Positions 2,968 to 21,171 of a stretch of DNA of 64,000 nt are shown piece by piece. Position numbers and translations under genes: made by a program. The number at the start of each line of letters is the position of its first letter. Position 1 is the first letter of the stretch. The notes below the pieces were generated by a model. That model was not told the DNA's origin. It searched no databases and was given only the letters and a program-made list of their open reading frames with translations. The DNA is from Tubulanus polymorphus (Eukaryota > Animalia > Nemertea): contig NC_134033.1 in the NCBI RefSeq assembly GCF_964204645.1, positions 16,004,655 to 16,068,654 of the forward strand, in the 5' to 3' direction.

Positions 2968-4068
2968 AAAATCAAAAGAAAACACTGAGAGCGACAACGT
3001 ATACAATAACATTGATAGTCGTTTGATACGTAAATATTTAATATGCTTGAGAAATAGATTTTGAATAAATTAATACACGGCGGGCGGTCAATTCATTATC
3101 ATGATTCACGCATAATCTACGAGAAAATAAAAACAAACAACCCTCAAAACAACAACAGCAGATAATAATCATAATCATTATCATAATCATAATCATATAT
3201 ATCAATATATCATGCAAAACAATAAAAATAATGATATTTCTCATTTTTTCGAAAGTGATGAAAACAGTTCTCGGGGTCCATCCAGGTATCCAGTCGCTCG
3301 ACTGGGTCTCCTAGCGTGGAGCTGGGCCTAGAGTGGAGTGTCCCCACCCCTCACCTAAAATTGAGTGCCCCCACCCCTCACCTAGAGTTGAGTGTCCACC
3401 CCTCACCTAGAGTTGAGTGCCCCCTCGCCTTGAGTTAAGTGCTCCCCCTCCCCTTCAACTCTAGTTGAGTGCCCCACCCTTCACCTAGAGTTGAGTGGAA
3501 TAGGGCGAGATTTGTTTGAATTGCTAATACAGAGTTAGTACTGATGTGTATATACTGTGGGTTTCGTTCATTCTAAAATCTCTCTCTCTCTTCCCTCTCT
3601 CCGTGCTCTTATCTCCGCTCTCCCCGAGCGCAAAGACTCGATCAACGCAATCCCTCTATTTATCGGTTATTTTAATCAGCCATGAATAGAAACGCTTCTA
3701 AAACCATCGTTGCTGCTGCTATTTCGCGGAAGCTTTTAAATAGCTTTTAAAAACTATGCTAGAGACTATAATTTTATAGAACCTGGTTCTACAGTAGTTG
3801 AACTGGAGGAAAGCTCACTCTTCATTGAAAAACATAGAGTCAACTTAATCAGGGTCACTACAGATCAGTCATTCCTGGATATAAGGAGAACTTCATTCCA
3901 AACTTAATTCCACACGATGCAAAACTGATCAAAATAACACACGACAAATATTTTCCAGTCACTGCAACAAACGGCACATTTTTCAGCTTCGAAAATTCAT
4001 CTAGTTCGCGTAAATTATCACTTAAACTCGAGCGCCGCGAGATCGAGATATCGGTCGCGTGTCGCACG

Positions 4069-4211
4069 TCACACGGTCGTGTGTTTACGGAATTCCAACG
4101 ACGCGCTGTTCACGCAATAGCGCACGCCCGTCTGCTTTTTAGGTCCGTCGTCGAAAACGTGTCCGAGATGCGAGCCGCATTTCGCGCATGTCGCCTCGAT
4201 CCTCTGCAGAC
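4069..4211 (-). CDS. Alternative duplicated terminal exon of the MsrB gene: [47 protein letters not shown]
   Basis: Polypyrimidine tract and CAG acceptor at 4214-4212. Phase 1 matches the donor at 8123. CxxC, HLGHVF and RYCVNS are intact. I saw no upstream MsrB exons between 4212 and 6683. Confidence 0.85.
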
Positions 4212-4356
4212 CTGAAACGGGAAAAAAAAACCGAAATATTATGTCGTGTATATTACCACTCGGTACGAGTGAACAAGCGGTGCAGACCCGCTTAAATCAT
4301 TCACGGGGAAAACCAGACCAATTTGGTGTATGAAATTTCCTTTCAGGCGGTTTTAA

Positions 4357-4803
4357 CCCTTTCAGTGCTGGCTAATTAATACCCTATGGGATCATTCATT
4401 TATTACGTACGCATAGAATTTGAATTTTTCAACTCCCCTCCCCCTCTGTACGCAAAGCGGCCATTTTTTCATATACATTAAGCATTACAGTACGTAATTG
4501 CCCTGACCCCTCCCCCTCCCTTGATGCGTACGTAATAAATGAATGACCCCTATGGTGCTGGAGATGATTTGAAAATTTTGAAAAATTCCACCCTAGTGTG
4601 TTTAATAACGGGAAAACCACGCGGCACGGTGAATCTTAGTTACTGATATTTCACTGTTTCACAGGTGCTGCCATCTTTCAATAGATATAAAAACTAATTA
4701 CTAATTACATCAATACACCATAGTGCAGTGTACTAGCGTGGTGTTCTAGCAAAATCCATCACTGATTTATACACCGCACTGCGGTGTTGATGCACTGAAA
4801 GGG
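4357..4803. mobile_element. piggyBac-type MITE with TTAA TSD; related copies at about 34352-34530 and 41842-42150
   Basis: TTAA-CCCTTTCAGTGC ... GCACTGAAAGGG-TTAA. Confidence 0.8.
4388..4550. mobile_element. PIF/Harbinger-like MITE nested in the piggyBac MITE; related copy at about 2624-2742
   Basis: TIRs gggatcattcatttattacgtacgca / tgcgtacgtaataaatgaatgacccc with 3-bp TSD TAT. The empty site is visible in the copy near 34380. Confidence 0.75.
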
Positions 4804-5339
4804 TTAAGAGGAAAAACCGAGCATTAGGCTACAGGTGTGGCACATACACGTACGGTTTAATCTGATTCGAAAAGATTACCATAGTTTTATGTTTCAACTC
4901 TATTACATGGTAATTTTAATCCACATCAGTGAATATTAAAACGTTCACGTATAGCTGCGAGTTATAAAGGATCTAATTCGGCAGTTGTTACGGTTGGAGG
5001 CTAGTAACACTCATCGGTTATAGTTCATTTCAAATGTTTTACAAGCGAATATGAGATGGACATTCCTTTCGAGATGCCGATTTTCCACGGGTTCTACTAT
5101 TGCCGCGGCGAATTTACTTCAATTTCGTCAAAACGTGGAATAGCAAGAAAATAAAACATTATTCACTAAACCATTGCCGCAGCAGCTACAGTTCCAACGC
5201 CACTGTTAGCCCAGGCCCAATTGGTATAGATCGCACCTGAGTCTAATTTGGCCCGTGCTTCATAATTAGAGAGTGCACTCACACGTAAACCACTCACTCA
5301 ATACTAAACAATCCTTTAACAAAGTGAAGTGAGTCAGAG

Positions 5340-5381
5340 CATGGACGTATAAACTAGATTAGTTTAGTTTATACGTCCATG
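5340..5381. mobile_element. 42-bp hairpin micro-transposon with P-element-like termini
   Basis: catggacgtataaacta...tagtttatacgtccatg flanked on both sides by the 7-bp direct repeat gtcagag. Confidence 0.75.
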
Positions 5382-6231
5382 GTCAGAGTCACTTCCGGAA
5401 CCAGTTGCAATTTAAACGCAATAACTTGACCCTTGCTAAAATTTGGCTCGATCTGGTCTGACATTTTTGTCAGGCCAAACAGGTAAGCCGATTTGGCACC
5501 TGTTGCTCCCGGCTAAATTTGGCACGGGCCAAAAATACTCGGGTGATCACTGCTATTATTGAACACTCCTCTGTAAACACACCACTGTCTATCATACAAC
5601 TATCCACTTATTTGCTCTGCTTTTAAACATGTTTAGTTTGTGTAACTATTTTCATGTCGTTCCTAGTTTCTATCATGTTTTATTACTTAATCAGTCTCTT
5701 TGTTCTAGATTATGTATTTCGCTGAGCGTGATGACTTAGTCAGATATAGTCGAAACGACCCCTGATATACCGCGGGCCCACATCGGCGCAGAACGGTTTT
5801 GGCGGTATAGAGAGTATGGCGGTATATCGGGGGTGTTTTATTATGTATCGGTATCGAGATGTACATTGAGAAATCCTGGCGAGGCTGGCGGGGGCGGAGG
5901 TAAATGGAAGGGCGGTATATCGGGGGTTGACTGTAGTTTGAAGAAACATTTCCGACTCTTTTTTCTTTTGATTTGAGGGATTGTATATTAGCTCAGTATT
6001 TCTCGGGTCTTGTATAAAGGAACTCCTTCCTCATTGATCTCACGGAGTAGTTGTTTGTACGGAATAGTTCTGCAATGTAGAAAGCGTGCTGGAATTTGAA
6101 ACACCTGCAGCTAAAACTGTATTACTAAAAATATAGCAGCAGCAACATCAGTGGCAGCAACAGCAAGCAATATCTCATCAGATATTCCACTGACATACCC
6201 ACAATTATATACCACTAGAGTATAGGGGTTC

Positions 6232-6470
6232 AGATATCACTGTAACATAGGGGTGCAGATACCCCTGTAACATAGGGGTGCAGATACCACAGTAACATAG
6301 GGGTGCAGATACCCCTGTAACATAGAGTTCCAAATACCACTGTAACTTAGGGGTTCAGATACCCCCGTAACATAGAGTTCCAAATACCCCTGTAACATAG
6401 AGTTCCAGATACCCCTGTAACATAAGAGTTCCAGATACCCCTGTAACACAGGGTTCTAGATACCCCTGTA
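6232..6470. repeat. About 20-bp minisatellite (cagatacccctgtaacatag...)
   Basis: Visible tandem units. Confidence 0.85.
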
Positions 6471-6682
6471 AAAGCAATTTTCCAAATATTTCCCGGATTA
6501 GCATAAAATCGATCGAATTCCCAAATATTTCCAAACACAGGGAACCGCGAGCGCAGTGTTTAAACTACTACACGATAAACCCATTAGAGAGAGATAGAGA
6601 ATTCACCAGAAAATCAAGACTTAAAAGAAAATATTCAATGTTTTTCATCATTCTTTATTTATTCAACTTTTAAAAATACGAT

Positions 6683-9186
6683 TTACAATTCATCTTTATC
6701 ATCGGAATCGGACGCCCGAAATCTTAACGAAGCCGAATTGATACAATAACGTACTCCAGTCGGCAACGGTCCGTCAGGGAAAACGTGTCCCAGGTGAGCC
6801 CCGCAACTACCGCACAATACTTCAATACGTTCCATCCCTGTAATCAAACCTTAGTCCCATAATATCTACATTCGAGTAAGGCCAAGTCATCAGGGGCAGA
6901 TCCTGAGGCAGACTTTGACGGGGGACAAAAAATGAAAAGGGTATAAACTGAAATATGGCAAGTTAACTATCCACGCACACAAAACAAGGGTCTGGGAAAT
7001 GTCAGTGTACACGTATTTTCATACAATTTCTAGGCGCTTGATGGACATTGAAGAGAATAAGCTAAATTTTCCATATACCTATAAGTTACATATCGCCAAC
7101 CTAGAACAGGCAATGTAGGTTCATTCAAAGTAAGTGCCAATTATCATCAACAATGTGTTTTTTCATGAAGTTTGTTATCAAATGTGTAATAGGACATTTA
7201 CTGGTTGGTATAGGCATACAGCCTAAAATTCAAAATAGAAGGGAAATTTCATTTTGTCACCTTTTCCTGATTTTCCATACATTTTCCTAAGCCATGTAGA
7301 GAACAAAAAACAAAAATTCTATAGTTTTTTGAGGGGCTGGGAAAAATGCCCACTTTCCAGAATCTGTAAGAACCACGCTACGACTACGGGCAACCTGATT
7401 CTCCTTCATTCAACTAAACCGTTAACACCCACTGGGAACCAACTCAGGACACCACTAAATCAGCAGGTTCGGATCAAGCAACTGAGCGCCAGCCACTCAG
7501 GGAATTTTTAAAAACTGGTTCAGCATTCCTTCTTCCCCCGTTAAAAAGCCTAGACATACAGAGTAGGCCTCTGAGTAGCAGAGGTCAGGTTGAGGAGAGG
7601 CCAAGGACCAGTGTTCTACATTTTGACGACAAGATAAAATATTTCATTTTTCCAATCTAAAATTCTCTAGAAAATGAAACCACAACGACGATATGAAACT
7701 TGATCTATAGTCTACATCTACACCGACGAACTACCACTGCTTCAACAGTTATATCTATATTATGAATAATCTAATTCTATTAATTGATAATATATTTCAA
7801 AGATTACTTAAATCCGACAGTTTAGAGATTTAACCAAATTTCATCTTCAGAGAAACAGTGCTGTTACTGTTATCACTGATTCTCTGAAGATGGGGGGTAT
7901 CTATCCTCCCCAGGCAGAGATTTGAACCTGATGACCCTTCCACACTAGACCGGGTGTGCACGAAACTTGCGGCGCCAATCAGCTCCTCAGATCGCTCGTT
8001 GTATAATCGCTGAGGCAAATTTCGAGGAAAAACTATAAATGGGATCCATCGCTTAACACTTAAAAACGTTTTTTCGCGGAGAAAATGAAAAGCCGACGAC
8101 AAATGAAACGGAGTGAGTCTTACCGTGTGAGAAATCTTTAACGAGGGTCACTTTTGATTTGTCGAGCGAGTCGAAGAAAGACGGCCAGCCGCAACTCGTC
8201 GAATATTTCGCGTCCGACGAGAATAAATGATTTCCGCAGACGATGCATTGATAAATTCCGTCCTCGTTTAGATTCACGTATTTACCGCTGAATGGCCTGA
8301 AAATACAATTATTACAATTCGTTTATTCGCTACTATAGAATTCTAATTCAGCAAATCACGCAGCCTTATTAGGGTTGTTACAAATCTTAAGTAACAAGTT
8401 GTCAGTTTGTCTATGAAGATCTTCTTTTGACTGGTCCAAATGGATCCAAATCAGCCAACAGGACTTACTTGCACTGATGTAAGTTAGATTGGCTATAGAA
8501 CTAAAATGAGCTCAGACTGATCCAAATTGTTAGATTGGTTATAGAACCAAAATGAACTTGGATTGGTCTCAATTTGTTAGATTTGTGATAGAACCAAAAT
8601 GAGTTTAAACTGGTTTTAAGTTGGTAGATTGGTTATAGAACTAAAATGAGCATAGACTGGTCTCAAGTTGTTAGATTGGTTATAGAACTAAACAGAGCTT
8701 AGACTAGTCTTAAGTTGTTTGATTGGCAATAGAACTAAATAGAGCTTAGACTGGTCTTAAGTTGCTAGATTGGTTATAGAACCAAAATGAGTTGAGACTA
8801 GTCTTAAGTTGCTAGATTGGTTATAGAACCAAAATGAGTTTAGACTAGTCTTAAGTTGGTAGATTGGTTATAGGCCTAGAACTAATAATGTTCTTAGACT
8901 GACCCCCCAAGTCTAAGCCCTGACTGTTCAACAGCTTCGAAGGACAGCTGCTCCTCATCGATACTCACTTTTCAGTTCCACCCTCTTGTGTAACCCGGTA
9001 CTCGGTCGCCGTTAAACGCTCTTTCAATTCTTCTTTCGGGAATTGTTCGTTATCGCATTTCGGACGTTTCTGTTTACACGAAGCCTCTAATTCTTTAAAC
9101 GTCGCCGATTTCTCATCTTTAACAATGCGTAAGATATTCATGAATACGAACAGACCCGTCGCCGTAGCGATCAACCGTCCTAACAT
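6683..9186 (-). CDS. MSRB3: Methionine-R-sulfoxide reductase B, MSRB3-like, KDEL isoform (exons 9186-8969, 8296-8124, 6837-6683)
   Basis: Spliced translation has MsrB motifs: [17 protein letters not shown], Zn ligands CIVC and [21 protein letters not shown] and catalytic RYCINS. The N-terminus is hydrophobic ([15 protein letters not shown]) and has a Cys pair (SCKQKRPKC) like MSRB3. It ends DDKDEL*. Splice phases match, and AATAAA lies about 20-30 nt after the stop. Confidence 0.9.
8480..8900. repeat. About 45-bp tandem unit (ggtcttaagttgttagattggttatagaac...) of a dispersed MITE-like family; also near 38090-38400, 43720-43870, 54330-54570 and 58233-58365
   Basis: The same unit recurs with variable copy number, often between short inverted termini. 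Confidence 0.8.
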
Positions 9187-11121
9187 CAACCACCGCGACC
9201 GCTGCTGATATCACTGAAAATAGATCCGCATAATACATATTAGAGTTCTGGAAATCTGCAAAGTTTGAGTCCAGGGGCCCGTGTAGAAATAATAATATAG
9301 GCCTAATAATGATAATAAGAATAATGATAATTTGTTTTCTTATAGGCCTGTAGCGCGATGCTAACCCTTAACCCAATAAAATGATTTTATTGTTACATAA
9401 TATATGGATCCGGTAAAATATCTTTTATAAGTCGGTAACCGGATCCGGCTAAATAACCACTTCCTACAATTTACATTCAACTTCACGAAGTCAGTCTATT
9501 CGTTGACATTTTGAGCTAGTTTTCCAAAACAAAACGGTTATTGACTATGAAATGAGCACTGACCTGTTTTCAGCAGTCTCTATGAGATTCTGAACCAGTA
9601 AATTCGATCTGTCAGTGCTGTAAACACTACTATTACAGCTGTCAGGAGAGACACGGTCGATTGATTTACAAAATCACCGATTATGTTGCAGAGCGCCGCC
9701 TAGCCAGTGGGAATGCTAGTTACTGTTTCGTAAGCACCAGGGCCGATCGTTTACAAACCTGCTAGACTGGTCGCCTGTCCAATTCTGCGCCACCTGCATT
9801 CGCAGGTTTAGACCGGCAACTAGTTTAGAAACCTGGGTGCCTGCCAGCCTTCATCCTCGCTTGCCAGGGGTTGGTTATCGCTACCGAACTCGGATCGCCT
9901 GACACAAAAAATTGTTTACCCCAGTATATATAAAACAATGTCTTTTCGTCAAAGAAGCCCCTCGGCCAAAAGTCCAAAACGTCAATGAGTCACGGCCTCC
10001 GCTGCAGAGGCGGGCGTTGACAATCGGATGGGTTACTAAAGTATTTTCTTTCATCGACATATTTTCTATGTAGGCTATGCAGTATAAATCATATGTTATT
10101 ACAAACAAGAGGGATGCATATAGATGGCTCATGGATGCGCGGCTTTATATCTCATCACCTGTTATAGGGATATTTCGTTTTTCTATAACATACCTCAAAT
10201 ACCGTACGAGGACCAGTGAATCTGCGCAGTCTGAATAAACCAGTGTTCTTATATCAATCTTTCACTGCGGTATGCCCTATTGAAGGATCGCCGAAAAGTG
10301 GATTTAGTCATTAAAACATTTTTTGTGCCCACGCCACATTATTGCCATGTTGGTAAAACCATTTACTATAATATTGGAGAGAGCACTTACAACACAAATA
10401 CTAAGACCAGTGAAACTGTGCAGCCCGAAAACCGTGTCGTGTTTATATTCATTTTGCAGTCTTTAAGTCGATTTTTTGTCATTAAAACATTTTTTGCTCA
10501 CGCCACATTTTCAAACTCTATATGCGATAATCAGTCAAATTTGTAAACTCCCTGGTGCAGTCTTAATAAACCATCGATTTTATCCATTTGTCGGTTTTTA
10601 AGTCGATTTCTTTTCGCATCAAAACATATTTTGCTCACACTACATTTACTCACTTATTGCTCACCGCAAGTGATAAGTATGTGATAATCAGTCATTTTAC
10701 CCCGGAATTTGGTGATAGGATGAACGGAGGTGGTGGGGGCCAGTCACACAGATTATAATGCGCGGCCTGTGTGGAATTAGTCACGCGTTTTGTTACGTCT
10801 TTTTTATACAAACGATGATTAACGACACAAAATAATAATTGGGAAATGCGGAAGTTTTTTTAAATTTTTCTATAGATGAATATATTTATATATAGTATAT
10901 TGACGATCAATTAAATCAGTTTGAAATATCTGTTTTACACAGAAACATTGAGAATGGTATTAGAATCAATAGATTATTCAATTTTGTTTGAAATCGACGA
11001 TTAAAAAATCTTCCTAGTAAGTAGCACTCACTATTATTATACGTGACGCTCACGCATTGTGTCTATTTACAAAAACTGTGTTGTTTCATTCGGGTTTTAC
11101 CAATTTTTTTCGGCGGGCCCG

Positions 11122-12733: not shown

Positions 12734-14546
12734 ATGAATGTGACTCCGCGCGTCTTCTTCATAGCGCTATGCGTTACTTTGATACACGGTGAGTTTCCAT
12801 AGAAATTTCATTTGATTTAGAAAGAAATGCGAATTTTCCGTCGACTTTCATGCGGGTGCTCGTGGTGTATAGCGGCCTTCTAGCACTTGCTCGGCCCGCA
12901 TAAGAGTCTTCTCAATTTCATTTCTGCTTTGTTTGTAAATATTCTTAAAACAGGCTACCTTATAAAATGAATTGAAATTGAATGAAATTGGAGCCAGCAG
13001 ATCCATGATTTTACTGGCATTCTATTTCTTGAAAATCCTGTATCTATTTTCAGTTTCATGTTCGTCAATAAGAATTACGGCTCCTGTTATTGAATTTGCC
13101 TGCGATGAGTTCTCGGCCACTTTGACGTGCCCGGTCGCCGATAACAGTAGTAGTGTAGTATGGCATCGGCTAGTTCACGGGAACTGGCTGCCGTTACAAG
13201 TGGGTCGCTTGGGACGTAACTCCTGGAAGCCTGTCGTCGGCGATATGTCAAAGATATCGACGAGATCGGTGAACACACACATGGCCGGAAAGTATCGCTG
13301 TAGTTATCCATCCGGTGCTATTATTCACGAGGTCGAACTCAGAGTCGACGGTACGTATTTCATTGATGCTTCTTCAAAAAAAAAAAATTGAATTAGAAAA
13401 AATCTAGTTTGTTCCAGAATTCATCGTAAACGTATTTGCTGTGATCAATTCAGCTTTTCAATTTTACCGACATCAAACGGTTTAATCCATGGCAATTTTC
13501 AAACAGATTCCACCAGCGGGGCATTTCCGTAAATTATGCAAATGAAGACAGTCGTAATATGCAAATCACCAACATTGATTTTCATTCACGTATTTTCGGT
13601 CTATAAATTAGTCATAATCAGTTACGTGTTTCTAGATTTAAAACTCTTCGCATTTTCAGTTTGTAACGGTCAAGTCGGTGACTGTACTGCGAAACCGGTT
13701 CTCGGCGATTTCGAGAATTTTAAAAATCGTAAAATCGAGATCAGCAGACGACACGGCGAGTCGGTTGCGTTTAAATGTAGCACGTTGAACGACTGGTTTT
13801 GTTTGAACTCGGATTGTTCTCAATGTTCCTCTGCGAAGGCAGACGACTCCTCTTCCCCGTCTGTCGTCTCGTCGTCGTTCAGATTTAAGTGAGTCGCGTT
13901 CGACGCGAAAACGAAAAACGTTCGATTCTGGATGGACAGTATCTACACTAATAGGTATGGCTATAGGATCACGGACAAAGATCAATTTTTTGGTTTAATC
14001 ACCGAATTTATATATTATTAATTCATGCTTTCAATGAGGACAACAATTAAAATTTAACCATTTTATGCTTAAACATTTTAATGAAACTGAACCCGGATTT
14101 TGAGAGGGGGACCGGGGCGTACTGGTCCAACCCCTCCAAAACTTGAATGTTTCACCAATGTTTCACACCTGCAGCCCTCGCATTGCCAACTCGGCCCTTT
14201 TTAAATTAAGTGTCCAATAAAATGTCTAAGACCACCCCGTTCAAAGAATCCTAGATCCACCATTGGAACCCTTGTTGCACCATATCTGGTGTGGTCTGGT
14301 GTACCTCACACAAGGCTTGACATTATAAGACCCGACACCTGGGCTTTGGAATCAACTTATTTCTTATCTGAGATTTTTCTTGCATTTCATAATTTCAGTA
14401 TCGACTACAGCTCATCGGAAGTAACGCTACATAATCTGAAGCGGTCCGACTCGGCAATTTACACGTGCTTCCTACCGAATTACTACGATCGAAAGACTAT
14501 ACATCCCGCTTTATTGAGATTTGAATACGTATTGACGGTCACATAA
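12734..14546 (+). CDS. Secreted protein with two Ig-like domains (exons 12734-12788, 13054-13350, 13660-13888, 14399-14546)
   Basis: Signal peptide MNVTPRVFFIALCVTLIHVSC. Ig1: ATLTC..VVW..AGKYRC..VELRV. Ig2: GESVAFKC..W..VTLHNLKRSDSAIYTC..YVLTV*. Splice phases are consistent and there is no TM segment. Confidence 0.75.
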
Positions 14547-15535: not shown

Positions 15536-16114
15536 TAACTTCACTGTCACTTCTATTAATCGTTACAATGACACTGTTGGGACCACATGGACTTGATTTG
15601 TCACAACATAAAAAGTTTTTTTTTATATATAGTACCTAGGATACTGTGGTCAAAATCATTTTGTATCAAGTCCCTGTGGCTGGTACGAATAAAAATATGG
15701 CGTTATAAAGAGTGATATTTTCATTAAATTTGAGTTTTATTGAGCAAATTTGTTCTCTGCAGAAAATGTTGGCGTCGAGTAAGCAGTGGCATTACAAACG
15801 ATGACTGCGTTAAAACGAACTTTTGACATTGGAGTACAAAGCACAAGATTTGATTGTCATTTCACAAATTTCTACTTGAGGCAGAAACAACCCGTTCTTC
15901 CCGCCGATTCTCACAAATTGCCGGTTGCAGGTTATCGCGGCGCGCGTACTGCCATTAACTCAAAACGCGTACGGTTTAGAAACATTGTCACGACGTCTCA
16001 TTTTTTTTAAGTACCGCTCCCGAACACCGGATAACCAGTAGTTAACTGCGAGCAAATGCGCGCGTGTTCCCGCTTCGGCGTTTCCTCGACTTATACCTCA
16101 GGCGCGTCGAAGTG

Positions 16115-17167
16115 ATGAACACAGGCAATGTAACCACAGGTTGGCACCCGGATCCACGGTGCGGAGTAACGATTCATATCAATTCTGGACAATTAATCGA
16201 CCGATATCTTTCCGATGTGTCCATGACGGTAGCTAGATGCGCCCTCTATGCAGCGGGTACGGTACTAAATCTCATATCGTACGTAGTTTTAGGGATGATG
16301 AAACTGAATAATTCCAGTGTGTTGTATTTGCGGTGTATCGCTCTGGCTGAAACTGTGCATTGTTTCATGGCGTTGTTCGGACGCGAATTATACGTATTGT
16401 CCAGGATATCTCCTTTCTTTAATCGCTACAAATACAAGGGATCTTTTTTAAATATGTATCTTCTAAATATACCACTAGTCGACACAGTCTATCGCATGTC
16501 ATCAAGAGCCAGAGACTGGTTACTGTTTGGGCTTTCGTTCGATAGATATTTAGCAATAGTTTTACCGCTTGTATCTTTGAGACTGTGCAGTTTGTCTAGA
16601 ACTAAACTAATATGTGTTTTCATGTGTACGTTTGCAACTTTGCTCGAAGTCCCGACCTATTGGGACAAAGTTATGGGAATCATCCCTCATAAATGTACCG
16701 GTCTACCCACTATAAAGAGTTATAAGTATCTTTTAAAACACAGGATGTACGCGCTTCTGTACGACACTATAGTCGGCAGTCTTTTGGCCAATTTGGTGCC
16801 GGGAACTGCTGTGATATGTTGTAACGTGCACATGTTGGTAATTCTGAAACGCACGTTCAGAGATCGGGCCAAACTGCAATTAAAACAGAATGAGAAAATG
16901 ATCGAAGAACAAAACCAAGGTTTACAGATCACAAAAATTGTCCTCATATTGAATTCGTTTTATTTTTTAGTATTTTCGATGAATTTGCTAAATACGCTTA
17001 TTCCTGTTTTCGGTACTAGGGCCAGTTTTCGTCCCTTTCATTCCGGTCAACTTCTACTGGCTGTGAATTCCATGATTAACTTCTTCGTTTATATTTTCAT
17101 TCGAAAGGATTTCGGGCGAACTGCTCTTCGGCTCGTGTCTTGTGGTATACTAGGGAAAAGGGTCTGA
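16115..17167 (+). CDS. Intronless class-A (rhodopsin-like) GPCR, peptide-receptor/chemoreceptor-like, copy 1
   Basis: Seven hydrophobic segments, FDRYLAI at the TM3 end, ECL2 Cys, NSMINFFVY (NPxxY variant) and N-terminal NVT sequon. Confidence 0.85.
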   Translation: MNTGNVTTGWHPDPRCGVTIHINSGQLIDRYLSDVSMTVARCALYAAGTVLNLISYVVLGMMKLNNSSVLYLRCIALAETVHCFMALFGRELYVLSRISPFFNRYKYKGSFLNMYLLNIPLVDTVYRMSSRARDWLLFGLSFDRYLAIVLPLVSLRLCSLSRTKLICVFMCTFATLLEVPTYWDKVMGIIPHKCTGLPTIKSYKYLLKHRMYALLYDTIVGSLLANLVPGTAVICCNVHMLVILKRTFRDRAKLQLKQNEKMIEEQNQGLQITKIVLILNSFYFLVFSMNLLNTLIPVFGTRASFRPFHSGQLLLAVNSMINFFVYIFIRKDFGRTALRLVSCGILGKRV

Positions 17168-19120: not shown

Positions 19121-20115
19121 ATAATGAAACGAAGTTCGTAGTAAAAACGAGGTTTCAATAATTCCTAAATCGGCGTTCATGTATAGAATGTAAATAGAAT
19201 AAAATACATATATTTGTGTATATTTTACATGGAATTAAACGTATTTACAGAAATCAAGTCTTTCTTAGAAATCTCATATTATATCTTATCGTATTATTTC
19301 TCGGGGGTATGATAAATTTGGGGGTATGGTAAATTCATAATCTGGATACGGAGAAAATTGAGGAAAATTGAATTGGGAAACCCGTAAGAACCCTGTTGAT
19401 ATTCACATAACTAGGCTAATACAGGTCTGATCTGTTTAGTATATGAAAAATTTGATTTAAGATCGATGATGATTATAATGATAATAATATGATTATAACA
19501 ATTTCTTATTTGAATTCCATACAAATCTAACAAAACTTATTGTTTTCACTGATAGTCTAGATACGGAGTTCCAGACTTTGGTTGATGGGGTCATGTGTCC
19601 TGAGTACTTGCCATATAGATTGCTAAAATGACACATTCTATATATTAATCACATCTAGAAGTTTAGTTTCATGTAAGGGACTTAGTGTATATGATGTGCA
19701 CGAGCGCAATAGAATCATCTGAATCATCTTCTGACATTTTCTGAAAATCTAATTACGATATCCTCAGTGGGTCGAATATATTGTATTCAACCTTGTATTT
19801 TAACTCCATTAACTTTTAAGGTTTAATTGACGTTTTCAATTAGAACAAAATGAAAAATAACGTTTCGTAAATTCATACGGCGTTGTGTGAGACCGTTTGG
19901 GTTTTTCAAGAATGAATGTGGTGAATGCTTTACAAATTTCTGCTTCTGGCGGAGACAACGACTCATTATTCTTCTCCCGATTCTCACAAATCGCTGGTTA
20001 TCGCGACGCGTGTACTGTGTCATCGACTCGCTGACTATAGGCGGTGTTTAGTGTTACAATAACATGTTAGAATCGTTTTTGAACATCTTTGTAACCACAG
20101 GTTTCGATCGCAGTG

Positions 20116-21171
20116 ATGAACACAGGCAATGTAACCGCAGGTTGGCATCCAGACCCACGGTGCGGAGTAACGATTCATATCTATTCCGGCAGACCGATCG
20201 ACCGTTACCTTCCCGAATTGTGCATGACAATAACTAGATGCGCCCTCTATTCAGCGGGTACGGTACTGAATCTCATATCGTACGTAGTTTTAGGGATGAT
20301 GAAACTGAATAATTCCAGTGTGTTGTATTTGCGGTGTATCGCTCTGGCTGAAACTGTGCATTGTTTCATGGCGTTGTTCGGACGCGAATTATACTTGTTG
20401 TGCAAAGTATCTCCGTTCCTCGATCGGTACAAATTTAAGAAATCTTTTTTGAATACGTATCTAGTAAACGCATTCCAAATTCTCGAAACAGTCTACCACA
20501 TGTCATCAAGAACCAGAGACTGGTTACTGTTTGGGCTTTCGTTCGATAGATATTTAGCAATAGTTTTACCGCTTGTATCTTTGAGACTGTGCAGTTTGTC
20601 TAGAACTAAACTAATATGTGTTTTCATGTGTACGTTTGCAACTTTGCTCGAAGTCCCGACCTACTGGGACAGAATTATGGAAATCAGACCTCATACATGT
20701 ACCGGACTGCCCACCATATACGGCGGTATGGGCTTGTTAAGATACAGAATGTACGCGCTTCTGTACGACACTATAGTCGGCAGTCTTTTGGCCAATTTGG
20801 TGCCGGGAACTGCTGTGATATGTTGTAACGTGCACATGTTGGTAATTCTGAAACGCACGTTCAGAGATCGGGCCAAGCTGCAACTAAAACCGAATGAGAA
20901 AATGATCGAAGAACAAAACCAAGGTTTACAGATCACAAAAATTGTCCTCATATTGAATTCTTTTTATTTTTTAGTATTTTCGATGGTTTTGCTGAATACG
21001 CTTATTCCTGTTTTCGGTTCTATGGCCAGTTTTCGTCCCTTTCATTCCGGACAACTTCTAGTGGCTGTGAATTCCATGATAAACTTTTTCGTTTATATTT
21101 TCATTCGTAAAGGTTTTGGCCGAACTACATTGTGGCTCTTGTCATGTGGAATACTAGGGGAAAGGGGTTAA
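20116..21171 (+). CDS. Intronless class-A GPCR, copy 2 (tandem paralogue)
   Basis: Same architecture and motifs as copy 1, with long identical nucleotide blocks. Confidence 0.85.
   Translation: MNTGNVTAGWHPDPRCGVTIHIYSGRPIDRYLPELCMTITRCALYSAGTVLNLISYVVLGMMKLNNSSVLYLRCIALAETVHCFMALFGRELYLLCKVSPFLDRYKFKKSFLNTYLVNAFQILETVYHMSSRTRDWLLFGLSFDRYLAIVLPLVSLRLCSLSRTKLICVFMCTFATLLEVPTYWDRIMEIRPHTCTGLPTIYGGMGLLRYRMYALLYDTIVGSLLANLVPGTAVICCNVHMLVILKRTFRDRAKLQLKPNEKMIEEQNQGLQITKIVLILNSFYFLVFSMVLLNTLIPVFGSMASFRPFHSGQLLVAVNSMINFFVYIFIRKGFGRTTLWLLSCGILGERG

Follow-up and report, generated by a model that had tools for sequence, protein, structure and literature searches.

The last coding exon of a methionine sulfoxide reductase B (MsrB) gene of the ribbon worm Tubulanus polymorphus exists in two homologous versions, both of which are used in transcripts. 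The gene lies on the minus strand of a 64,000-nt window of contig NC_134033.1 (positions 16,004,655 to 16,068,654; coordinates below are those of the window), with a first coding exon at 9213-8969, exon 2 at 8296-8124 and alternative last exons A at 6837-6683 and B at 4211-4069. Each last exon supplies the catalytic Cys, exon A followed by a KDEL end and exon B by HTTV. As the best overall explanation, with a probability of about 70%, we propose that choosing between the two would swap the catalytic C-terminal third of the enzyme together with its cellular address.

Structure of the gene and use of its two endings

The last exons sit in tandem, in frame from one donor, each with its own stop codon and poly(A) signal. 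Exon 2 ends at 8124 with the donor GTAAG from 8123, AG acceptors lie ahead of 6837 and 4211, and all splice sites are GT-AG. Joining exon 2 to A or B with a local script, used to check the frame, gave proteins of 181 and 177 residues respectively from ATG 9186, or 166 and 162 from ATG 9141; homolog searches were run per exon, and the RefSeq proteins served for a structure-library search and for alignments. All coordinates and in-frame joins proposed for both last exons in a first-pass annotation of this DNA were thereby reproduced. The elements of the gene, all on the minus strand, are as follows.

9564..9659, minus strand: candidate untranslated first exon; single-copy in the genome, ends at a CAG/GTCAGT donor, without an ATG
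8969..9213, minus strand: first coding exon; short untranslated region, ATG1 at 9186, hydrophobic 15-residue extension, conserved ATG2 at 9141 (MNILRIV), CX6C pair and first helices
9142..9186, minus strand: signal-like extension before ATG2; weak ATG1 context (T at -3), no out-of-frame ATG before ATG2
8124..8296, minus strand: exon 2; first Zn-binding CxxC, GWPSF, phase-1 donor common to both endings
7125..7222, minus strand: minor non-catalytic ending (RefSeq X3); acceptor inside a dispersed repeat
6683..6837, minus strand: last exon A; carries the second CxxC, HLGH and RYCIN (containing the catalytic Cys), then an acidic tail and KDEL
6654..6663, minus strand: overlapping AATAAA pair of exon A (at 6663 and 6659); an RNA-like contig stops at 6641
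4069..4211, minus strand: last exon B; carries the second CxxC, HLGH and RYCVN (containing the catalytic Cys), then the conserved tail RKHTTV
3671..3676, minus strand: ATTAAA at 3676, likely distal poly(A) signal of exon B; a contig of run X4 (record 25) stops at 3647

Exon 2, A and B each separately passed the curated SelR cut-off of 24.9 bits, with A (E 3.7e-17) and B (E 3.3e-18) both matching positions 75-115 of the 116 of this model (PF01641). Both last exons carry the residues of a Cys-type MsrB: two CxxC motifs when combined with exon 2, the catalytic Cys with Arg and Asp, and His77, Val/Ile81 and Asn97, the diagnostic sites of this type (PMC1278935). The gene product is a Cys-type, MSRB3-like MsrB with predicted reductase activity, the MSRB3 assignment being that of the best animal structure match. 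The acceptor of exon A is weaker than that of B (pyrimidine content 0.45 vs 0.85) but its poly(A) signal follows directly, an AATAAA lying 20 nt past the stop codon, which is the usual set-up of competing last exons.

RefSeq holds both forms for T. polymorphus: XP_074657793.1 (isoform X1) is the exact A join and XP_074657794.1 (isoform X2) the exact B join. Of four public sequencing runs compared over 3500-9499, the one labelled X4 behaves as RNA. In this run intron 1 is spliced out at a depth of 236 (joint 8295>8968), the exon-2 contig stops at the fork (8123) and separate contigs begin at each acceptor. Record 28 spans exon A over 6641-6838, from the acceptor to 6641, and record 26 spans exon B from 4209 with 31 leading letters, leaving the intron side (4210-4299) uncovered. 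These letters are as predicted for a contig built from 31-letter words that leaves exon 2, because exon 2 plus GT matches the first letters of B. Depth arithmetic left a remainder in two separate bins, indicating an A-junction contig at approximately 132-133, compared with 25 for B and 11 for X3; this contig is deduced and falls outside the rows listed, and depths of contigs reflect transcript level poorly. The same contig accounts for the missing depth that had suggested a third strong last exon. Together, the RefSeq isoforms and the contig ends and depths of run X4 show that both last exons are used in transcripts, and we hold structure and expression jointly to be close to certain. Of the transcript support that the first-pass annotation called for, this gives contigs on each last exon, interrupted at its acceptor.

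Two features absent from that annotation were also seen. RefSeq X3 uses an acceptor at 7222 that lies in a repeat present at least 40 times in the genome; this isoform reads on into the poly(A) site of exon A, lacks the active site and is probably splicing noise from an exonised dispersed repeat. An upstream untranslated exon joins at 9213 (acceptor at 9214), as 96 letters of record 31 of run X4 run past 9216 and fall outside the compared stretch. The CAG/GTCAGT donor of the candidate at 9564..9659 is the best of six upstream CAG/GT donors. Each allele has an in-frame stop before ATG 9186, which excludes an upstream coding exon: in the other allele (run X1) the in-frame TGA of 9213 is lost, but a new one is present at 9190.

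A search of the 268-Mb genome with the SelR model returned only exon 2, A and B together with a separate locus on contig 4, and hence exon B is without an upstream half of its own. In this species no other Cys-type (MSRB3-like) MsrB gene was found, which agrees with the earlier claim of one gene with two retained catalytic last exons. At the contig 4 locus (23927418-23927795) the catalytic site is an in-frame TGA and the three diagnostic sites are Gly, Glu and Phe; the locus reads as selenoprotein MsrB1, and no selenocysteine insertion sequence was detected by Rfam within the 4 kb scanned.

Tails, start codons and predicted locations of the two products

Searching with exon B identified orthologs in gastropods, bivalves, a chiton, a second nemertean and annelids. 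When proteins were selected on the MNIL-type N-terminus alone, 37 of 39 were found to end in K[HEQ]TTV; the other two are one sequence cut short and the KDEL form of the gene described here. The L007 locus has HTIV. A class I end (S/T-x-hydrophobic) occurs in 0/118 other MsrB hits, and the tail was not seen outside lophotrochozoans among the best 120 hits of the homolog search. Third codon positions under the tail vary freely, placing the constraint on the peptide. The modelled Lineus protein has a fold closest to MSRB3; its last strand stops at residue 157, and the HTTV that follows is without secondary structure. Class I PDZ ligands are C-terminal X-S/T-X-hydrophobic sequences (PMC7138185), a pattern that the exon B tail matches in being C-terminal, conserved and outside the fold of the Lineus model. 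The tail is thus probably a selected binding motif of the class I PDZ ligand type, and its near fixation across three phyla suggests a partner; that this partner is a PDZ protein we would put at slightly short of even odds.

Alternatively, the tail could be conserved for a structural or degradation reason, such as packing on the fold or avoidance of a C-terminal degron. Near fixation of K at -4 and T at -1 exceeds the generic needs of a class I ligand, and residues 151-160 of the model are predicted with high confidence, both in line with such a role. Other MsrBs, including the exon A form, nevertheless fold without this tail, and the variation that does occur (T to I at -1; H, E or Q at -3) falls on the free positions of the class I motif. 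We regard this alternative as unlikely, though it keeps more weight than the others considered below.

At the N-terminus, MNI(L/I)(R/H) is found at the position of ATG 9141 in all orthologs. A hydrophobic extension of 11-15 residues with its own Met precedes MNIL only in Tubulanus, ark clams, mussels, scallops and a few clam-like proteins; in Tubulanus its hydropathy is 2.1 over 12 residues. The first ATG has T at -3 in all four cases read, a context that would allow leaky scanning. In gap-free loci with 6-10 kb of flanks read, exon A was absent and only B present in Lineus, Liolophura, Solemya, Paralvinella and L007, and a signal-like extension in the MNIL exon was likewise found in 0/5 of these: B-only species have a stop or no Met at that position, with Solemya retaining an eroded, charged remnant. 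The Tubulanus CX6C pair aligns with that of human MSRB3, while Tegillarca and Mytilus have CX5C; in human MSRB3 the CX5C pair recycles the enzyme, which is targeted to the endoplasmic reticulum (ER) (PMC7475093). The pair is kept in extension-bearing species, whereas a single Cys is present in Lineus, the chiton Liolophura, Solemya, L007 and many gastropods. In RefSeq the B form is named "isoform X2" for Tubulanus as well as for three scallops and two mussels, and extension-free species have no isoform label. From this pattern, exon B is judged to be the indispensable form, with exon A and the extension lost together several times; the link between exon A, extension and Cys pair draws on few independent contrasts (one nemertean pair and one bivalve pair). 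A search of the ESM Atlas with the N-terminal exon returned nothing useful. As a separate observation, the heterobranch snails Aplysia (P0037), Biomphalaria (P0031) and Bradybaena (P0038) have a long, variable N-terminal insert, some with new Cys clusters.

KDEL-like ends are restricted to exon A (KDEL in Tubulanus, KSEL in an animal contig, L017, and a doubtful SPEL in Tegillarca). We propose that the last coding exon of a single MSRB3-type gene was duplicated early in lophotrochozoan history, and that a near acceptor with its own poly(A) site (A) would compete with a far one (B). Translation would start at ATG 9186, giving the signal-like N-terminus, or at ATG 9141 by leaky scanning. The long start with A would yield an ER enzyme retrieved by KDEL and recycled via the N-terminal Cys pair, like vertebrate MSRB3A. 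The short start with B would yield a non-ER and most likely cytosolic enzyme, its free K[HEQ]TTV tail being recognised by a partner protein, for which a class I PDZ scaffold is the likeliest candidate. A split into an ER and a non-ER product is well favoured, and one gene probably supplies the enzyme to two cell compartments. The first-pass annotation had left the HTTV form either secreted or cytosolic; the short start at 9141 is now favoured and the secreted form less so, because the MNIL start is present in all orthologs and B-only species are without a signal-like extension.

The short B enzyme could instead be mitochondrial, replacing the missing MsrB2, with MNIL(R/H)xV and the next helix acting as an import signal as in MSRB3B and the tail serving another role. 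The SelR search of the genome did not find MsrB2, and several orthologs bear the (automatic) name "B3, mitochondrial-like". MNILHLV resembles the MSRB3B start. In vertebrates MSRB3B is a mitochondrial form, and mouse MsrB3 carries one ER and one mitochondrial signal in series (PMC6316033). However, the first 30 residues have a net charge of 0 to +4 with several acidic residues, unlike the usual presequence, and a matrix location gives no ready reason for the near-invariant terminal TTV, making this location improbable.

Age of the exon pair and weight of the evidence

Synonymous sites are saturated between A and B (pS, the proportion of synonymous differences, 0.83), compared with a nonsynonymous proportion (pN) of 0.24, and the two allelic differences within exon A (run X1) are both silent. 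Both exons are thus intact and under purifying selection. Intron positions are identical in 7/7 orthologous loci checked. In the clam Tegillarca granosa A and B follow in the same order, A ending in SPEL with AATAAA close behind and B in KETTV. In L017 the end of A (KSEL, with AATAAA approximately 21 nt on) lies 3.1 kb ahead of B (KETTV). The AATAAA is 20-55 nt past exon A in these two loci. In an exon tree the two full A copies fall outside the B group, with support of 77/76 without the tail and 93/94 with it. On these comparisons the ribbon worm and some clams share the same ancient exon pair, and the proposal of an old duplication retained by selection stands, resting on the pS/pN contrast and on the pair in other animals. 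Intron 1 of L007 (5820-7680) contains approximately 20 tandem copies of a unit of about 97 nt, each consisting of the acceptor and the first 17-24 codons of exon 2.

Several points weigh against the scheme. The joints 8124>6837 and 8124>4211 are not among the matches listed, and no record identifies run X4 as RNA. The locations and the PDZ binding are both predicted from sequence; the homolog list was ordered by similarity to exon B, a bias in favour of the tail, and the Tubulanus extension is without an obvious site of cleavage. Because the two endings have a common 5' end, mismatched products (signal with HTTV) are expected too unless the 5' and 3' choices are coupled. In Tegillarca, SPEL may retain the protein weakly or not at all: a reporter with proline at that position was not retained in human cells (PMC2140024). 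In annelids the Cys pair is present although exon A is not. Both exons are present in three species only, of which L017 was seen without upstream exons, and the locus of the scallop Mizuhopecten has a 7.5-kb gap where exon A would lie. Finally, the exon tree is weak, and species-wise duplications were not rejected (approximately unbiased test, p 0.11 and 0.13).

This last result, obtained for trees in which A is constrained to group with the B of its own species, together with the patchy distribution of A, would fit separate origins in Tubulanus and bivalves, in each case by a copy of exon B gaining an xxEL end. Against this, RYCIN is found in all three A copies vs RYCVN in nearly all B copies, the A copies all lie upstream of B with a close AATAAA each, Tubulanus A is nearer to Tegillarca A (75%) than to its own B (70%), A resembles the human MSRB3 end, and Solemya has kept an eroded extension. 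Separate origins are consequently a poor explanation, well behind a single duplication. That exon B is part of a second gene or a dead copy was rejected and has next to no likelihood, given the lack of another upstream half in the genome, RefSeq X2 (the B join), the pS/pN contrast, a spliced B-type mRNA in Mytilus and the use of B as sole last exon in five species; none of the findings that would have undone the first-pass proposal (an unused exon B, separate upstream exons, neutral evolution) was made.

Relation to known systems and neighbouring features

The nearest solved animal relative by sequence and fold is vertebrate MSRB3, likewise a Cys-type Zn MsrB, with an N-terminal Cys pair, a KDEL-like end and two N-termini, in series in mouse (PMC6316033, PMC7475093). 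Vertebrates, however, vary the first exon over one KAEL tail, whereas Tubulanus doubles the catalytic last exon, with K[HEQ]TTV in place of the ER tag in the second copy and both starts in one exon. Homologous exon substitution (PMC4465641; PMC9013439) also involves old tandem copies used singly with the fold preserved. Unlike those cases, the exon swapped here carries both catalytic Cys and address, and one copy has been lost repeatedly. Duplicated alternative exons are a known and often ancient class (PMC4465641, the main text of which has no mention of MSRB), and both isoforms are already in automatic annotation. The earlier statement that no equivalent has been described accordingly holds for MsrB in the papers searched, a literature lacking most subscription journals, in which no account of this arrangement or tail was found; it does not hold for the class of event or for the isoforms as such. 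A further parallel is offered by CDC42, whose last exons are homologous and differ in the targeting tail. Two alternative 3'-terminal exons are co-expressed from that one gene (PMC4870516). Both CDC42 forms face the cytosol, in contrast to the choice proposed here, which would part ER lumen from cytosol and would need a matching start codon.

More tentatively, and at odds clearly below even, the MNIL...KHTTV protein may be an unrecognised scaffold-anchored methionine sulfoxide reductase, kept since the ancestor of molluscs, annelids and ribbon worms. It would have been born by duplication of the MSRB3 catalytic exon and have become indispensable, while the ER form was repeatedly lost as a package (signal extension, KDEL exon and often the Cys pair). 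A PDZ anchor would put methionine sulfoxide reduction at synapses or junctions, and this bears on the placing of methionine sulfoxide reductases near chosen substrates, for example Mical-oxidised actin. As molluscs and nemerteans without the ER exon are mostly without the Cys pair, they offer a natural experiment on whether the N-terminal pair of MSRB3 is adapted to ER recycling, a question raised previously (PMC7475093). The gene would also exemplify dual targeting from nested starts combined with a duplicated catalytic exon. The B form is carried by Aplysia, Lymnaea and Biomphalaria, which opens it to tests in working laboratory animals.

Elsewhere in the window, tandem repeats of 47, 25 and approximately 27 nt occupy 8483-8873, 6222-6471 and 3327-3497, in introns of the gene and downstream of it. 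A divergently oriented gene on the plus strand (12972-13900) has a signal-like start and, by eye, one or more immunoglobulin-like exons. Also by eye, a segment of about 1.2 kb recurs as two diverged direct copies, at approximately 15900-17140 and 20000-21160.

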